Positions 18,833 to 36,003 of a DNA stretch of 64,000 nucleotides are shown in pieces (the stretch's first letter is position 1; the number at the start of each line of letters is the position of its first letter). Source of the stretch: Adineta vaga (taxonomy: Eukaryota > Animalia > Rotifera); contig CP075495.1 of assembly GCA_021613535.1 (NCBI GenBank), forward strand, positions 15,066,001 to 15,130,000, written 5' to 3'. A program made the position numbers and the translations under genes. The notes under the pieces were generated by a model. That model did no database searches. It saw only the letters and a list, made by a program, of their open reading frames with translations, and was not told where the DNA came from.

Positions 18833-18996
18833 TCATTTTTTCCTAATCGTATATCGACATTGAGAGCAATATCATCAATGAGATTTGACCGATAAATTTG
18901 TTCCTAATACAGAAAGAGAATGAGTTTTGTTTGAGATAAATCTTACATTATTAGAACCTCCGCTATAAAATGGAGTACTTACATTTGCATGTCCAC
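18833..18996 (-). pseudogene. Deleted paralog of the nested secreted peptide gene at 31544-32030
   Basis: GHANVSTPFYSGGSNN|intron|EQIYRSNLIDDIALNVDIRLGKK*, with the same intron position as the intact gene. Confidence 0.7.
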
Positions 18997-19027
18997 TAAA
19001 AGAAAAAAGCGAAAGTTAAAGTGTTAA

Positions 19028-19399
19028 ATCGATGTGACTAGCACCATTTTCAGCTAGCACCACAAAATCAAGAATTTTCTCAAAACGAATTCCCGTCCAT
19101 GTAAAACAGTCTATCCGACGCAGAATTCAATTATGCATCGAATGATGTCACTTTTACTCACGGGAAAACGTATGGAAAAATTTAGTGAGAATCTTTCTTT
19201 TGTACATGTATGTATACAACAAAAAATAAAAATTGAGGTAAGCTCTGTTCCGATCGTTTTCCCGTGAGTAAAAGTGACACCATTCGACTTAGAATTTATT
19301 TCTGAATCTAATGAACTAGTTTTTATGGGCGGGAATTCGTTTTGAGAAAATTCTTGATTTTGTGGTGCGAGCTGAAAATGGTGCTAGCTTCACATCGAT
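19028..19399. mobile_element. Palindromic MITE/foldback element
   Basis: Long imperfect inverted arms (ATCGATGTGA..CTAGCACCATTTTCAGCT..CACAAAATCAAGAATTTTCTCAAAACGAATTCCCG and its reverse complement). Confidence 0.85.
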
Positions 19400-19547
19400 A
19401 AAGTTTTAATCGATGTTAACTAAGAAATCTATATACATCATAAAGATGAAATTTGATTAATAGTTAAGATTTATAAAGAAGAACAGATCGTGTAAAATAT
19501 GATTGATTTGCATACAAAATTTAAATATTTGTTTTACTTTTCTTTAG

Positions 19548-21110
19548 TTTATGGTGCTCGTCCATTGAAACGTTATCTTGAAAAATATATTACAACTGAA
19601 TTATCAAAACTATTAATTCAAACAAAACATGCACCACATAGTCGTGTAACAATCGATAAAAATACAAATGATCAATTTCAATTTCATATTAAACAATTAC
19701 AACGAACAACATCTAATTCACCAACTAAATCAGCATATGGTCGTTGTAACGATAATGATATCGTTCATCTCTTCCTGTTCTCTATTCTCTCACCTCTATA
19801 TCATATTGTCTCCGGGTCATCTCTCTCTTTCCTCTTCTCTATATAAACGTGTGTCTTATTGTGAAATCGGGACATTCTGGTCATGTAGAGTAGTCAATAA
19901 ACATCATACCGTGAGAGGCGGTTAGCTACTCAACCAGTTTGTCATTACATGGCGACCCTGGCTAGTGAATCTTCGCAAATCTATTCTAAGCAGATTCTCT
20001 AGTAAACACCAACAACATGGAAGATCAATCAATGAATCAATGGAAACTTAATGGTCAATCAGTCACTGTCATGTATGCAAAATAGCAAGTATGGATTTTG
20101 GATTAATGTGATGATGAACCTCCTCAACGGCATGAACGACATCGTGATCGCGTGGGCAAGCGTTGGCAGGAATATTGATTTGGAAATAATTATTTGAAAG
20201 AAAGACAATTTAAGAATTTTATTGATGTGTAGCTGCGAGAACGACCCAACGACCGAACAGCCGAGTTATCCGTGAGAAGAATGACATGGAAGTGTTCCCC
20301 TTCTACTGCGTGGCGATTCATTTTATTGGCACAAGATTCGTTCGAATAAAGTTGCATACAGAAGAGTGCACTAACTGACTCATTATATTTTTATTTTTTT
20401 TGCTTTGTATGAAACATCGAGGTAATCGATTTAAGCAAGAGGATGAGGAAAAGTCGTAGTAAATATCTCTTTTTAATGCGTATGTGTTTGATATTGCGCT
20501 AATTTTTTTTGTATGAACATCGTAGTTGTTTGATCGCAGTTTATTTAAACTATTTCGTTTTATGTAAACGTTTATAAATCGCATTTTTTGTTGAGATATT
20601 TTAATGTATTCGATGAGTTTATATTGTTCGTAGTCATGTGACCTTTCTCATGATCATTATCTACTCATCTTCATTTTTTTTTCGCTTTCGACTTTATATT
20701 GTAAAGACGCTCAGGAGCGCGTCTAATCTGAATGGGAGGGTGTAACGATAATGATATCGTTCATCTCTTCCTGTTCTCTATTCTCTCACCTCTATATCAT
20801 ATTGTCTCCGGGTCATCTCTCTCTTTCCTCTTCTCTATATAAACGTGTGTCTTATTGTGAAATCGGGACATTCTGGTCATGTAGAGTAGTCAATAAACAT
20901 CATACCGTGAGAGGCGGTTAGCTACTCAACCAGTTTGTCATTACAGTCGTAAGTGTATTTTTTAATTTCGGAATTAATTTTATCTCGAATTCTTTTCTAT
21001 TCTTAGGTCGTCGCACATGCATATGAAGGTTTAGATGAAGACGAAGATTATGATAACAATTATACACGAAAACAAGAGAAAATTATAGATATATAAGAAA
21101 CAACAATGAC
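19548..21110 (+). pseudogene. Duplicated last two exons of Hsp104/ClpB, interrupted by an LTR element
   Basis: [21 protein letters not shown] matches 32231 onward; last-exon remnant [13 protein letters not shown] at ~21007-21110. Confidence 0.85.
19745..20945 (+). mobile_element. Non-autonomous LTR retroelement (TRIM-like, 1201 bp)
   Basis: Two apparently identical 205-bp TG...CA LTRs (19745-19949, 20741-20945); 5-bp TSD GTCGT; PBS-like TGGCGACCCTGG at 19950; PPT AATGGGAGGG at 20731-20740; no gag/pol ORF. Confidence 0.93.
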
Positions 21111-28615: not shown

Positions 28616-31600
28616 ATGTCTTATTCTCCAGAAGACTTTACTGATCAAAGCAATAAAGCAATATCATTAGCATTGGAATATGCTCAAGAACAAAAACATA
28701 TTGAACTTGTACCATTACATTTAGCACATGTACTTGTCGAAGATGAACAAGGTTTAGCAAGACAATTAATAAAAAAAGCTGAATTTAATGTACAAGAAGT
28801 CATCGATGCAATCGATATCAAATTACGAAAATTATCGAAACAAGATCCACCACCAAGCAAACTTTATCCGAATGCATCATTTATGAATGTATTAAAACAA
28901 GCAAAAAAGTTATCGAAATCACAAAAAGATTCTCATACAGCAATTGATCATATTTTGGTTGCTTTATATGAAGATTCTGATGCAACATCAGCATTTGTTT
29001 CAGTTGGATTAAGTAAAAAACGTATGGAAGAAGTTGTAAAACAAATTCGACAAAATAAAAATGTGACATCAGCTAAAGCTGAACAAACCTATCAAGCATT
29101 GGAAAAATATGGTCATGATTTAGTTGCTGATGCTGAATCAGGAAAATTAGATCCAGTTATTGGTCGTGATCAAGAAATTCGACGTTGTATTCAAGTTTTA
29201 TCACGACGAACAAAAAATAATCCTGTTCTCATTGGTGAACCTGTAAGATTTTAATGAAAAAAATTTGAAAAGAAAATTTCAGCTTTGATTTCTAATAGGG
29301 TGTGGGTAAAACAGCTATTGTTGAAGGTCTAGCTCAACGTATTGTTCATCAAGATGTTCCAGATACATTACCACGACGTTTAATTGCATTAGATATGGGT
29401 GCTTTAGTTGGTAAGATTTAAGAAGGAGAAAAAGAAAACAAAACAAATTGATTTTAATGATTTTTTTTTCTTTTCAGCTGGTGCAAGTCATCGTGGTGAA
29501 TTTGAAGAACGTTTGAAATCAGTTTTGAAAGAAATTGAAAGTTCAAATGGTGGAATTATTTTATTTATTGATGAAATACATTTAGTGCTTGGTGCTGGAA
29601 AAGCTGAAGGTGCCATGGATGCTGCTAATCTATTAAAACCAATGTTAGGTAAGTTATGATGAATTATTTTCATTGAAATATTTCTATTTTTGTTTTATTA
29701 AGCTCGTGGTGAACTTCGTTGTATTGGTGCAACAACTTTAGATGAATATAGAAAATATATTGAAAAAGATCCAGCATTTGAACGACGTTTTCAACAAGTT
29801 ATGGTTAAAGAACCAAATGTTGCTGATTGTGTTTCAATTTTACGTGGTCTTAAAGATCGTTATGAATCACATTTTGGTGGTATGTTCTATTACATTCTCA
29901 TTTCTTTCATATTCTTTTCTCTTTTACTAGTTCGAATTCTCGATTCATCTTTGGTCATTGCTGCACAATTATCGAATCGTTATATTACCAATCGATTTCT
30001 TCCGGATAAAGCTATTGGTAAGAAAATGCACTGGAAAATCAACTTTTTAATCATATTTTTTCTTCTTCTTGTTCAATAGATTTAATTGATGAAGCATGTG
30101 CAAGTATTCGTGTTCAATTGGATAGTCAACCGGAAATTATTGATCAATTAGAACGTCGTGAATTACAATTAGATGTTGAAGCAACAGCTTTATCTCAAGA
30201 AAAAGATGACGCATCAAAACAACGTTTGAAACAAGTTAAAGAAGAATTAGCTAAAATTCGTGAAGAATTAAAACCATTGAAATTGCGACATCGAGCAGAA
30301 AAAGAACGTGTTGATGAATTGAGAAAATTGAAACAAAAGATGGAAAATCTTCAAGTTAAAATGGCACAAGCTGAACGAGAGAAAAATTTGGCGTTAGTTG
30401 CTGATATGAAATATGGAGCTATTCCTGATCTTGAAAAGAAAATTGCTGAAACAGAACATCGTATTACAGAAGAAAATAAACAACAACAAGATCGATTATT
30501 AACTGAAGTTGTCGGACCAAATGCCATTGCTGAAATAGTCAGTCGTTGGACAGGTATTCCTGTATCGAAATTATCTCAAACAGAACGTGAACGTTTATTA
30601 AAATTAAGTGAACATTTACATAAGAAAGTTGTTGGTCAAGATGATGCTGTTGATAGTGTATCTGAAGCTGTACTTCGAAGCCGTGCTGGTCTTTCAAGAG
30701 AAAATCAACCGATTGGTTCATTCTTATTTTTGGGTCCAACAGGTGTTGGTAAAACTGAATTAGCAAAAACATTAGCTTTAGAATTATTTGATTCAGTTAA
30801 ATCAATGGTTCGAATTGATATGAGTGAATATACAGAATCACATTCAGTTGCTCGATTAATTGGTGCACCACCAGGTAAGTTATTTATGATTTGTATTCAT
30901 GTTCTAAAAATGTTTTGTTTAGGTTATGTTGGTTTCGAACAAGGTGGTCAATTAACTGAAGCAGTTCGACGACAACCTTATGCAGTTATTTTGTTTGATG
31001 AAGTTGAAAAAGCTCATCCACAAATTTGGAATACGTTATTACAAGTTTTGGATGATGGTCGTTTAACTGTAAGTTTTTTCGTAAGGAAAAAAAAAGTTAA
31101 AGTTATTTTGATGAATCAATATTTAGGATGGCAAAGGACGAACTGTTGATTTTACAAATACAATTATTGTATTAACATCAAATATTGGTGCACAATATAT
31201 TTTAGAAGAAGTCGAACATCCTACAAAGACTTCTGATGGAAAATTATCTCAAGCAATTAAAGATCGTGTTATGAAAGAAGTTCGTCTTCATTTTCGACCA
31301 GAATTTTTAAATCGTTTGGATGATATTGTCTTCTTTCAACCATTGAATGTCAATCAATTATCATCAATTGTTCATCTTCAATTAAAATCATTAGAAGAAC
31401 GTTTGAAAGAACAAGATATCGAAATTAGTTTAACTGATCGAGCAATTCAATCAACACTCAAGAAATCTTATAATCCAGGTATGTTAAAGAATATTCTTGA
31501 TTTTTTATTCATAGTTAGATTTTACAGAAGACAAAACAAACATTTATTTCTTTCCCAATGGAATATTTATACCAAGACCGATATCATAGTTTGGATTTGG

Positions 31601-32644
31601 TGCATTAATTTGTCCCTAATTGAGAAAGAGCAGATGTGTTTTTTCTAGATAGTTTGTATGAAAAAGAAGAGACTTACATTATTAGAACTCAAACTTGCAT
31701 CGACAGTTCCACCAAGACCAACTGAAGGTTTATCAGAACCTCCATTGTAGATTGGAATACCAACATTTGCATGTCCATTAACATCATAAGTATTTAGATT
31801 ACTGAGACCAGCACTGCCTTCTATATCTGATGTCCACTAGAATGCAAACATGAAAGTTAGAAAAATGAGTAGATCAATATGTATTTAAATACTTGTCCCG
31901 ATTGAGCAGCAGCAAGAGCTAATTGTGATGCAAGTTGTTGTTGAGATAGTTGAAAAGTTATTGGAAAAGCTTCTACTACCATACCGAACATTAATACATA
32001 CAAACAGAGGGTAGATCCTAAGGAATGCATAGTGGATATAATGTTCGGTCGATAATAAATGTTTTATGAATATTGATCATCGATATTTATAGGAGAAAAC
32101 ATCGAGTAACTTAATATTGATTTGGATCCAAAATGTAAATATTTTTTATCAATATAACACCTTCAAAATCAATTTAAAATACAAATATTTATATAAATTG
32201 TTTTTGAATTAATAATTTCTTTGATTTTAGTTTATGGTGCTCGTCCATTGAAACGTTATCTTGAAAAATATATTACAACTGAATTATCAAAATTATTAAT
32301 TCAAACGAAACTTGCACCACATAGTCATGTTACAATTGATACAGATACGAATGATCAATTTCAATTTCATATTAAACAATTACAAAGAACAACATCGAAT
32401 TCACCAACAAAACCAGCATATAATCGTAAGTCTTTCAAATGATCGAATGAGTTTAATTTAGATCGATTTTTCTAATAAGTTAGGTCGTCGAACATATGAA
32501 GGTTTAGACGAAGAGCCAATGATGGATGTCGATGAAGATGAAGATTATGATAATAATAATCAATTTAGTGGTTATGACAACAATATGAATCCATCATCAG
32601 GAATTTCAAAACGAATGAAACAATCACCAAGAACATACAAATGA
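28616..32644 (+). CDS. HSP104: Hsp104/Hsp101/ClpB disaggregase (cytosolic type), multi-exon
   Basis: Clp-N domain; [10 protein letters not shown]; Walker A GEPGVGKT and GPTGVGKT; FIDEIH; coiled-coil M domain; [10 protein letters not shown]; YGARPL. Short GT-AG introns plus one long intron (31479-32230). Confidence 0.95.
31544..32030 (-). CDS. Nested 122-aa secreted Gly-rich protein (not in ORF track)
   Basis: Exons 32030-31893, 31836-31678 and 31615-31544 with phase-0 GT-AG introns give an open frame with a signal peptide and a stop. Confidence 0.82.
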
Positions 32645-33889
32645 TGAATGATTTTTCGTGCAATAAAATTGACATTATAATCTGGAAGGAATTTTCTTTC
32701 ATTTAGCGTATTTTATTTTTAAGCTTAGTTATGTAGTATCTCGTGTGTTATTTTCTTTTCTCTTGTTAATAAACATTCTTTAACTCATTTAAATATCGAA
32801 TGAAGAGTTGTTCGTAAGCACAATCAGAACAAAAATAATGAGAAGATGAAGATTAATGAATCGTTTGACTGCTATTCGACAGATGATGATGAGCACGACT
32901 AAATAAGATACTTTGGAATTACTTATCTTCATTATGATGAAAAATTAAAGTGATAATAACTACAATATAGTTTCCTCTTTTATGATTTTCTTCTAACGAT
33001 GAACACGGAAAAGCGACGATCTGCAGAAGAAGCCCAAAACTTAATTGCTGCACTGGCGATTAATATCGCCGCATGGGATGACCAAGAGATGGACGAAGAT
33101 GAAGAGAAAAAGTGAATAATTTTTCGAACAGTCAGCGAAGTCGACACAAGATACGCATATATATATGACTCCATCTTTCTTTTCTAGATAAGTATGTGCA
33201 AAAACACCGAACTTATTAATCAGATATCTGTTGATATCACAACAACAAATACGACGAATAATGTAAGTTCCTTACATAGTTATCCCATATCAATAATTCA
33301 TGTGTGAAGGTGCGCAGGAATTAACATGAAGCTTTCTTCTATCAGATCCATGAATGCTTATTAATTATTACTTTTAGACATCATCGAACGAACAAAAACT
33401 ACTTCGTATTATGAATCAACAAGAATTAACAGATTATTTTCAACAAAAACTTATGATCGAATGACTCCATCGAGATGTAGAAGTTGCTGAAAAGAATTTA
33501 ATTGTTGGTCAAATGAACTTTCACAAAAAGATAAAGGAAATTCTATATAAACATTTGGAAAAAGTCATGCTACATTATGAACTGTGGAATAACTTTCTTC
33601 TCTTTTTCTTCATATCAAATATATGCTTTGTCCAAATTAAGTTTTTTGCGATATACAATTTTCACACAGAAAAAGAGCTCACATGATTAGAACTAAAACT
33701 TACATTAATAATACTATCTATACCACCTAATGATTTATCAAAATCTCTATTGTACATTGAAATACCAATCTTTACATACGCCCTCATATAATAGTAGTTG
33801 AGACTATTAAGAACAGTAGTCGATATACTATATCAGATGTTCACTAAAAGAAAAAATATATAGATCAAGAAGATGATTAGATCAATATG

Positions 33890-34250
33890 TTACAACTGAA
33901 TTATCAAAATCATTAATTCAAACAAAACTTGCACCACATAGTCATGTTACGATTGATACAGATGCAAATGATGTATTTCAATTTCATATTAAACAATTAC
34001 AAAGAACAACATCGAATTCACCAACAAAACCAGCATATAATCGTAAGTCATCTTAATCATCAAACCAAATTCATTTAATTTTTTTTTGCTAGGTCGTCGA
34101 ACATATGAAGGTTTAGATGAAGAACCAATGATGGATGTCGATGAAGATGAAGATTATGATAGCAATCAATTTACTGGATATGACAATAATATGAGTCCAG
34201 CATCGGGAATTTCAAAACGAATGAAACAATCACCAAGAACACGCAAATGA
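33890..34250 (+). repeat. Duplicate of Hsp104 3' exons
   Basis: [19 protein letters not shown]..., intron, then an intact last exon [20 protein letters not shown]...PRTRK*. Confidence 0.88.
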
Positions 34251-34954
34251 TGAATTATTTCTCATGCAATAAAATTGACATTTAAACCCTGAAAAGGTCT
34301 AATTTTTATTCCATATTTATTTTCAAGCATTTTTATATAGTATACCGTGTGTATGTTTTCTTGATAATAAACAAAATATACATTAGAATCTTTTCTTTGA
34401 ATGATGTCATATCGAATGTAGACCTAGTAGAAAGTATAATCAAAATAAATATGCGATTTATTGTTGAATAAAAACGATGAGCATAAACAAGCATATTACA
34501 AAAGGTTTTTTGCAAATGTATATTTGATTAGTAATCGGATGTCTGTAGATTTCCTTGCGATCGAAACCTCTTGAGGGAGGGGGTGACAGCATTTTTCGAA
34601 TAGCCGAACGAAATGGGAAAAGAATAAATAGACGAATTAGATTCATTGATCCCATTCGATTTTTTGCAGTCTGTTCGGATCTCCATCTCTTGTCTTTTGA
34701 GCTTTTAGATTAGTCAACATGAGAAAAACACGGGTAGCGAAGCAGGAAGCGCAAAATAACATGGCTGCGCTTACAATCACGCTGTGTAAGTTAACTTCGT
34801 ACGATATCCAATCTAAACTACGTGTTATCGTTTTAGCAAGTGAAAGTGAACGCTCGGATACAACAGTTTCCAAAAAACGGATTTCGACGGATCCGACAGG
34901 TGGCCACAAGACCACAATAAAATATAGCTTAAAAGAACGCTCATAAAATTTGCA

Positions 34955-35080: not shown

Positions 35081-35699
35081 GTTATCGCTCCAAGACATCA
35101 AAAGCTGCATAGTTGAAAACTCGAATACTCGATTTATAAGTTGAATAGTTGAAGAGGAACTTTAAGACTCGAATCGCGTTAACGATTTCTACACTACTCA
35201 ACTTATTGCTATAGAAAAAACAGTGGCGGAGAAAAATGCGGCAATTGCAGAGAAAAACCTACAAGCTGCTGAAACAAATTTATACAAAATCATCAACGAT
35301 TTTCTCTTTCAACGTGTAAATGGAGATGATTCTATTGACTTAACTACGATCATGTAGAATTTTTTTTTGTTTCTCACATTATGTTGTTTGACAGATATTC
35401 TGTATTTGAAACGAATATATTAAAACGAAAATTTCCATTGAATATATCTATTTATTATCATAGTAGATGTGACTGAATACAAGTGAAGAATAGATCTCAG
35501 CGTATTTTGATTGATAGCAGATGTTGCATAAAGATTGATAAACAATATTTATGAGAGAAATCAATGAGTATATTAAAAATTGATTTCGTACAAAAATAAA
35601 TCTTTTTTTTTATAAATATAACACATTGAAAATCAATTTAAAATATTAATTCAAATATTTGAATATGTCGCTAAATGAGTCAATAATATTCTTTCTTAG

Positions 35700-35860
35700 A
35701 TCGTCGAACAGATGAAGGTTTAGATGAACAATCAATGATAGATGTCGATGAAGATGAAGATTATGATAATAATAATCAATTTAGTGGTTATGACAACAAT
35801 ATGAATTCATCATCAGGAATTTCAAAACGAATGAAACAGTCACCAAGAACATACAAATGA
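35700..35860 (+). repeat. Further duplicate of the Hsp104 last exon
   Basis: Acceptor TTCTTAG retained; open frame to PRTYK*; followed by AATAAA. Confidence 0.88.
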
Positions 35861-36003
35861 TGAATGATTTATCTCTCATACAATAAAATAAAATTGACAT
35901 TAGATTTACTTTTTTTTTATTTCATATTTAATTTTCAAAATAAGTGTTGAAGTGAGTCTTTTCTCTATTGTTAATAAATATCCTTCCGAATTATGCATAT
36001 ATA

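Follow-up and report, generated by a model that had tools for sequence, protein, structure and literature searches.

The DNA analysed here, called the window throughout, is a stretch of 64,000 nucleotides (nt) from the bdelloid rotifer Adineta vaga (contig CP075495.1, positions 15,066,001 to 15,130,000 of the forward strand), taken from an assembly of 100.8 Mb in six contigs with a GC content of ~30%. On its plus strand the window carries an Hsp104/ClpB-type gene (28616-32644), and one intron of this gene houses, on the opposite strand, a three-exon gene for a small protein with a predicted signal peptide. To our knowledge, Hsp104/ClpB-type disaggregases are a gene family that is unusual for animals. 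The Hsp104 gene was the only full copy in the assembly, a query with its penultimate exon matching only fragments within the window. The intron that harbours the nested gene is the sole long intron of Hsp104, the remaining eight that were located being 48-67 nt in length. Its donor GTATGT is preceded by ..AAT CCA G and its acceptor TTTTAG precedes TT TAT GGT.., while the two exons that border it shared 92-97% amino acid (aa) identity with the Hsp104 exons of Adineta ricciae. The features of the intron are as follows.

31479..32230, plus strand: host intron of Hsp104, 752 nt, phase 1, GTATGT..TTTTAG
32155..32175, minus strand: conserved upstream block AAATTGATTTTGAAGGTGTTA, 21 nt, shared without mismatch by the window and the two A. 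ricciae copies; candidate regulatory site
32084..32091, minus strand: TATA box TATAAATA, located 61 nt before the start codon
31893..32030, minus strand: exon 1, 46 codons from the ATG; predicted signal peptide and Gln/Ala-rich helical segment
32030..31968, minus strand: predicted signal peptide, 21 residues, with predicted cleavage before Phe-Pro
31837..31892, minus strand: intron 1, 56 nt, phase 0, GTATTT..CTAAC..TCTAG, with CTAAC as the branch motif
31678..31836, minus strand: exon 2, 53 codons; core of the Gly-rich beta region, with the family motif P-[IV]-Y-N-G-G-x-x-x-P-S-[VI]-G
31616..31677, minus strand: intron 2, 62 nt, phase 0, GTAAGT..AATTAG
31544..31615, minus strand: exon 3, 23 codons and TAA; last strands P-N-Y-x-x-G-x-G and C-terminal Gly-Lys-Lys
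31504..31509, minus strand: AATAAA poly(A) signal, 35 nt past the stop codon and ~25 nt from the host donor site

The original prediction, made from the sequence of the window, had placed a hidden antisense gene of three exons in this intron. When the minus strand was read, the coordinates, the splice sites and the protein all matched, and the three exon translations taken in order gave the proposed 122-residue protein, residue for residue. The complete unit, from the TATA box (32091..32084) through the coding sequence (32030..31544) to the AATAAA (31509..31504), is contained in the host intron (31479..32230), and the nested introns of 56 and 62 nt have sizes typical for this gene region. The nested gene had also been proposed to explain the one long intron of Hsp104, and the lengths agree with this, as 752 nt stand against 48-67 nt for the other eight. 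Upstream of the gene, the TATA box lies inside a 17-nt block, ATTTTCTCCTATAAATA, which was identical in the window, in two A. ricciae loci (L009 and L010) and in a metagenome locus (L013). The sequence around the 21-nt block was otherwise 72-73% identical between the window and A. ricciae, with gaps.

Conserved homologues, on whose existence the original prediction had made itself depend in part, were found in A. ricciae, in an environmental relative and in Adineta steineri. In A. ricciae, which has two copies, and in the environmental relative the nested gene occupies the matching Hsp104 intron, with both of its own intron positions retained. Specifically, the nested exons lie between the same two Hsp104 exons and on the opposite strand in four A. 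ricciae contigs (L005, L009, L010 and L011), and a close relative known from two metagenome contigs (L013 and L014) showed the same nesting. Exons 2 and 3 of the window aligned with A. ricciae at 81-85% nt identity and free of gaps (exon 2 at 81-82%, exon 3 at 83-85%), and their translations were 72-83% identical to the A. ricciae orthologue. In contrast, the alignments of intron 1 (58-62% identity) and intron 2 (63-65%) were gapped, as was that of the 3′ flank of the nested gene (63-65%). The Hsp104 exons, compared between the same two species, reached 87-93% nt identity with few or no gaps. Furthermore, an AATAAA was present at the corresponding place in A. ricciae.

The pattern of substitution pointed in the same direction. 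Using Nei-Gojobori counts made per exon and summed over 101 codons of the window and A. ricciae, we obtained a ratio of non-synonymous to synonymous change (dN/dS) of 0.27-0.33 in the proposed frame, as compared with 1.2 and 1.9 in the two other frames. Exon 3 alone gave a dN/dS of 0.15, and the comparison of synonymous with non-synonymous change yielded a Fisher p of 1.3e-5. The pair formed by L009 and L010 was also considered as evidence for selection and was set aside as silent on this point, because the two are 94-98% identical throughout.

Conceivably, the locus could be non-functional, the open frame having arisen by chance or the antisense transcript of the intron being non-coding, and a family that is small and confined to one genus would fit such an explanation. 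However, a dN/dS of 0.28 in frame against more than 1 in the other two, exons without gaps next to gapped introns, and the conservation of the start codon, the splice sites, the stop codon, the TATA box and the AATAAA all argue against it, as does a ~40% identical homologue that shares both intron positions. Frame-specific substitution together with the conservation of the TATA block, the 21-nt block and the AATAAA is a pattern for which neither a chance frame nor a purely non-coding antisense RNA can account, and a non-functional locus appears extremely improbable. What was observed goes far beyond what chance would be expected to give, because A. ricciae has kept all three exons with their splice sites, the TATA box and the poly(A) signal, together with coding-type substitution. 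At the level of sequence, these comparisons demonstrate that the nested gene is conserved and under selection and that the N terminus of its protein resembles a signal peptide, and it is very probable that this is a real, selected gene for a secreted protein.

The product has already been predicted, without a name, in the annotations of A. ricciae and A. steineri, and the A. ricciae prediction is independent of ours. A profile search recovered the A. ricciae protein P0008, the cluster of which includes the 120-aa protein P0011 (CAF1109361.1, UniProt A0A814PQC1), annotated as an unnamed protein product with a start methionine equivalent to that of the window gene. CAF1109361.1 is the positional orthologue, located in the same Hsp104 intron and interrupted by the same two introns. 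CAF1538129.1 (A. steineri, 118 aa) is a further family member, likewise an uncharacterised, unnamed protein product. Two longer A. ricciae models of 187 aa, P0008 and P0010 (L005:619-2240 and L010:8001-9620), splice a cysteine-rich upstream exon across the 3′ exons of Hsp104 onto the nested gene, and neither the window nor the 120-aa model has this additional N-terminal part. Because in L009 the same upstream exon belongs to a separate gene of 127 aa, the fusion probably arose as an error of gene prediction.

A HMMER search with exon 2 against 1.84 billion representatives returned a single relative, P0004 from A. steineri; the other proteins retrieved (P0001-3 and P0005-7) were ankyrin, laminin-G and similar proteins and were rejected as chance matches. 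Searches with window sequence used the three exons separately, and where a complete protein was required, orthologues from the databases (P0004, P0008-P0011) served as queries. The similarity to P0004 covers all three window exons including both exon junctions. The A. steineri gene is ~40% identical to that of the window, with 46-49% aa identity in exon 2, and on its contig two introns interrupt the gene at matching codons with an unchanged phase (phase 0). No Hsp104 exon was found within 313 nt upstream or 4-6 kb downstream of the A. steineri relative, which carries a TATAAAAG of its own. Thus the A. steineri relative is free-standing, and the family is not bound to Hsp104. Between the two A. 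steineri loci that carry it (L012:314-783 and L003:25-461), similarity is limited to 579 bp surrounding the gene, beyond which the sequences differ. In addition, the A. steineri member has an R-x-x-R motif after the signal peptide, which the nested copies do not have.

Word-indexed searches with P0004 and two profiles, covering candidate lengths of 59-210 aa, returned only Adineta proteins and one metagenome open reading frame (P0012), with no member from other rotifer genera in that length range. An A. vaga record of the product was not among these candidates either, although the records searched may lack those of the window's own genome. When metagenomes were scanned with a profile and with a 25-nt pattern from exon 3, there was no match. 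The proteins form a small family that has so far been encountered only in Adineta among the rotifers and elsewhere. In the literature searched, neither this gene nor attacin-like rotifer proteins nor nesting in Hsp104 was described.

The signal peptide that the original prediction had proposed is backed by a hydrophobic N-terminal core, with a mean Kyte-Doolittle value of 2.3 over residues 7-19, and by a conserved cleavage context, all members having small residues at -3 and -1 and Phe-Pro at +1 and +2 of the predicted site. A pro-like segment, which had been proposed to follow it, was not upheld, as no conserved cleavage site delimits such a segment. The mature part of the window protein comprises 101 residues without cysteine, of which 14% are glycine, 11% asparagine and 11% serine. 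Across the members, glycine accounts for 14-25%, asparagine for 10-11% and serine for 9-12%, and cysteine is absent from every mature part. This composition, together with the alternation of hydrophobic residues and glycine, agrees with the cysteine-free, glycine-rich region of alternating beta-strands that had been predicted. The earlier remark that the protein is not cationic was likewise correct, as it carries a net charge of -3, which becomes -5 when the terminal Lys-Lys is left out of the count, and the same holds for the A. ricciae orthologue. The A. steineri relative, in contrast, contains 24.5% glycine and neither Asp nor Glu, and has a net charge of +7.

Three motifs are invariant across the family: P-[IV]-Y-N-G-G-x-x-x-P-S-[VI]-G, P-N-Y-x-x-G-x-G and, at the C terminus, P-x-G-[KR]-K. 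The N-G-Q at the exon 2/3 junction is invariant as well, and every member ends in ..P-L-G-K-K or ..P-F-G-R-K. A glycine followed by basic residues at the C terminus is the standard precursor of a C-terminal amide. A Cu2_monooxygen (PHM/DBH-type) domain scored above the cut-off in the genome, this being a domain also shared by dopamine beta-hydroxylase. The C-terminal Gly-basic signature of amidated secretory peptides and a candidate domain of the amidating enzyme are thus both present.

The gene could accordingly be read as the precursor of an amidated signalling peptide or a small hormone-like protein, in line with its signal peptide, its conserved C-terminal glycine followed by two basic residues and the PHM/DBH-type monooxygenase domain in the genome. 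However, the family has no conserved internal dibasic cleavage sites, and its conserved part is a beta-rich domain of ~75 residues rather than a short peptide, which makes a signalling precursor very unlikely. For the mature protein we infer secretion, C-terminal amidation and a beta-hairpin fold.

The original prediction had likened the mature region to antimicrobial peptides of the attacin/diptericin class. The nested protein has in common with attacin, diptericin and gloverin a signal peptide and a cysteine-free, glycine-rich region of ~100 residues that is predicted to consist of beta-strands. The A. steineri relative is moreover cationic (+7), as are the classical antimicrobial peptides, whereas the window protein is anionic. 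It also differs from these proteins in that its bearer is a rotifer and not an insect, and in that the motifs PIYNGG..PSVG and PNY..G.G...P.G-K-K are the Adineta family's own. At the level of sequence profiles the likeness was not recovered. When the three exon peptides, the full-length orthologues P0004 and P0008 and the segment P0008:87-187 were submitted to hmmscan, neither Attacin_C (PF03769) nor Attacin_N (PF03768) matched at E<=10, and Gloverin (PF10793) had no match at E<=10 with either the exon peptides or the full-length orthologues. PF03769 and PF10793 were equally without a match when the entire genome was scanned in six frames, and the control genomes were also without attacin. The Pfam families OEP and DUF3996 gave sub-threshold matches only, and sequence searches of PHROGs, NCBIfam and PDB gave no significant match.

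A search by language-model features, on the other hand, did place members of the family close to these effectors. Two queries were used, the A. ricciae mature protein and the A. steineri protein, which are ~40% identical to each other; because they are related, the results count as one line of evidence. A cluster annotated Diptericin-D / Attacin_C scored 0.92 with 177-178 shared features, a Gloverin / Attacin_C cluster 0.90-0.91 and an Attacin cluster 0.88-0.89. The clusters of diptericin, attacin and gloverin shared 163-178 of 256 features with the queries, at least 170 being typical of same-family matches in a calibration that does not extend to parts of proteins. In the unfiltered search, unnamed phage clusters scored as high or higher. 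The language-model neighbours (0.88-0.92) are a lead towards attacin and diptericin; the Pfam comparison at E<=10 and the genome scan gave no match.

It is possible that the protein is a true, very diverged member of the Attacin_C superfamily, acquired by ancient descent or transfer, in which case such effectors would not be confined to insects. Supporting this idea, the clusters of Diptericin-D, Attacin_C and Gloverin recur for two members of the family with 163-178 of 256 features, and the build is similar, with a signal peptide and a glycine-rich beta region of ~100 residues. Against it stand the missing matches to PF03769, PF03768 and PF10793 at E<=10 and the empty six-frame genome scans with PF03769 and PF10793, and also the language-model calibration, which was not measured for protein parts and may follow composition. 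We consider membership unlikely. The resemblance to attacin and diptericin is one moderate lead, possibly due in part to composition, and does not establish that the protein belongs to Attacin_C.

The top named neighbour of both queries was in fact a cluster of tick glycine-rich salivary peptides (0.92-0.93). This tick cluster of secreted salivary gland peptides favours another explanation, in which the protein is a structural or adhesive glycine-rich secretion, such as pedal-gland cement, cuticle-like integument or egg shell, the strands of which stack into fibres or sheets. The absence of cysteine and the contents of glycine (14-25%), asparagine (10-11%) and serine (9-12%) fit such a protein, and the anionic charge of the nested orthologues fits it at least as well as an antimicrobial role. 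Structural glycine-rich proteins are, however, usually repetitive and multi-copy, whereas the nested protein is single-copy, short and non-repetitive, and its strictly conserved non-repetitive motifs and amidation-type C terminus suggest a defined fold or processing. A structural role therefore seems rather doubtful, although it is one that we would keep in mind.

The original prediction had also raised a membrane beta-pore. An AlphaFold2 model of the A. ricciae mature protein, built from a five-row family alignment, had a predicted local distance difference test (pLDDT) score of 53.6 and placed a helix on the Gln/Ala-rich segment and, after it, hairpins made of strands 10-15 residues long, consistent with the visible alternation of hydrophobic residues and glycine in the sequence. 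With this low-confidence model, a structure atlas returned pieces of outer-membrane barrels at template modelling (TM) scores, by query, of 0.55-0.66, and Foldseek found no match in PDB at E<=0.001, with autotransporter anchors appearing at E ~0.1. By VIA superposition, pore-form gasdermins, RCD-1 and a complement pore were matched at Z 6.3-7.3, where the typical best Z of the background is 7-8. The helix and strand meander of the model can be superposed (Z 5-7.3) on proteins that form transmembrane beta-hairpins, namely gasdermin/RCD-1, MACPF pores, trimeric-autotransporter anchors and small outer-membrane barrels, but these proteins have no sequence similarity to the nested protein and the scores lie within the background. 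The structural matches, all inside the background, would thus indicate only long beta-hairpins. The basis of the beta-pore idea is this low-confidence model (pLDDT 54) with its predicted amphipathic hairpins, the best structural matches of which all fall within the background.

Taking these data together, we propose the following course. The antisense gene inside the long Hsp104 intron, with its own TATA promoter and poly(A) signal, would give rise to a preprotein of ~122 residues, from which the 21-residue signal peptide would be removed before Phe-Pro to leave a mature protein of ~100 residues. This protein would consist of a short amphipathic helix and four or five long amphipathic beta-strands, rich in glycine, asparagine and serine and free of cysteine. 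Its C-terminal Gly-Lys-Lys could be converted into an amide by a carboxypeptidase and a peptidylglycine monooxygenase. The beta-hairpins might then associate with membranes or microbial envelopes, so that the protein would work like attacin, diptericin or gloverin while having no demonstrable membership of their families. That the nested gene encodes a secreted protein of an Adineta family acting as an extracellular envelope or membrane effector of the attacin/diptericin working type is, taken as a whole, a reading to which we give slightly less than an even chance. A defence or membrane-active role as such is held tentatively, as a possibility. Our guess at the ranking of roles puts an envelope or membrane effector first, a structural or adhesive secretion second and an amidated signalling protein third.

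Several observations weigh against an effector of this kind. Language-model scores of 0.9 were reached by 4-10% of shuffled proteins and may reflect composition, and comparison with the profiles of Attacin_C, Attacin_N and Gloverin gave no similarity. In the window as in A. ricciae, the nested protein is anionic (-3), which sets it apart from the classical cationic antimicrobial peptides. Finally, the confidence of the structure model is low (pLDDT 54), and none of the structural matches obtained with it rises above the background.

In animals, genes nested on the opposite strand within an intron are known in which the whole transcription unit is located in the host intron and the arrangement is kept between species, as was the case here, and nesting as such is therefore ordinary in kind. 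What is particular to this instance is the host, a stress-inducible gene that is unusual in animals, and not the layout itself. Its position within Hsp104 makes the gene suitable for a straightforward test of whether a stress gene and its guest interfere with each other in transcription. In addition, the gene adds a selected, unstudied family of secreted proteins to the bdelloid rotifers, in which defence against fungi and bacteria and the survival of drying are active topics of research. RNA sequencing of A. ricciae and A. steineri from a Rotiferophthora infection series has been published (PMC11258130). The anionic nested copies and the cationic free-standing copy provide a natural contrast within the family. 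Should the likeness to attacin and diptericin reflect homology or a genuine analogy of function, immune effectors rich in glycine would also occur outside the arthropods; if the protein is structural, the finding would be an ordinary nested orphan gene. A more far-reaching scenario, which we regard as improbable, is that Adineta possesses a very diverged branch of attacin/diptericin-type effectors, a class linked until now to insects, with one copy antisense in Hsp104, where host transcription driven by heat or desiccation would collide with that of the guest, gate the effector and so couple the stress state to surface defence.

Remnants of the nested gene were detected at two further places in the window.

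33683..33811, minus strand: decayed copy of exon 2 (35% aa identity over 43 residues, DNA 71% identical), inside the Hsp104 3′ partial duplicate 33670-34282
18838..19015, minus strand: decayed exons 2 and 3 (50% over 22 aa and 48% over 21 aa), beside the Hsp104 3′ fragment 19543-19744

There was no exon 1 or exon 3 beside the decayed exon 2 copy at 33683..33811, and a third Hsp104 fragment (35513-35902) has kept only promoter-like sequence and the last host exon. Searches of the species' own genome revealed no second intact copy, the count being one intact and two decayed copies, both of the latter in the window. As the decayed pieces stand beside 3′ duplicates of Hsp104, the host intron was duplicated repeatedly with its guest as one unit, and the nested copy within the intact Hsp104 is the only one that stayed open. 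In the neighbourhood of the intact gene, the 3′ end of Hsp104 is present in three further, partial copies (33670-34282, 35513-35902, 18838-19744 and 20993-21063). Their exons are 86-92% identical to the parent at the aa level; one copy contains a TGA, and in one partial duplicate ~1.25 kb is inserted between the last two exons.

Two A. ricciae contigs are irregular in the Hsp104 region. In L009 (CAJNOJ010000100.1), an in-frame deletion of most of Hsp104 with the nested gene left intact was considered and rejected, because the junction (L009:8636-8638) is a single N, that is, an assembly join. This N connects residue 52, in Hsp104 exon 1, with residue 33, in the exon that precedes the host intron, and is probably a scaffold join. 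In L010 (CAJNOJ010000551.1), a series of Hsp104 exon pieces, from the end of exon 1 through exons 2-3 to the beginning of the large exon, occurs twice in tandem at L010:11470-13910; the product is annotated with 1159 aa, and the repeat may be genuine, as an internal duplication, or else an artefact of assembly.

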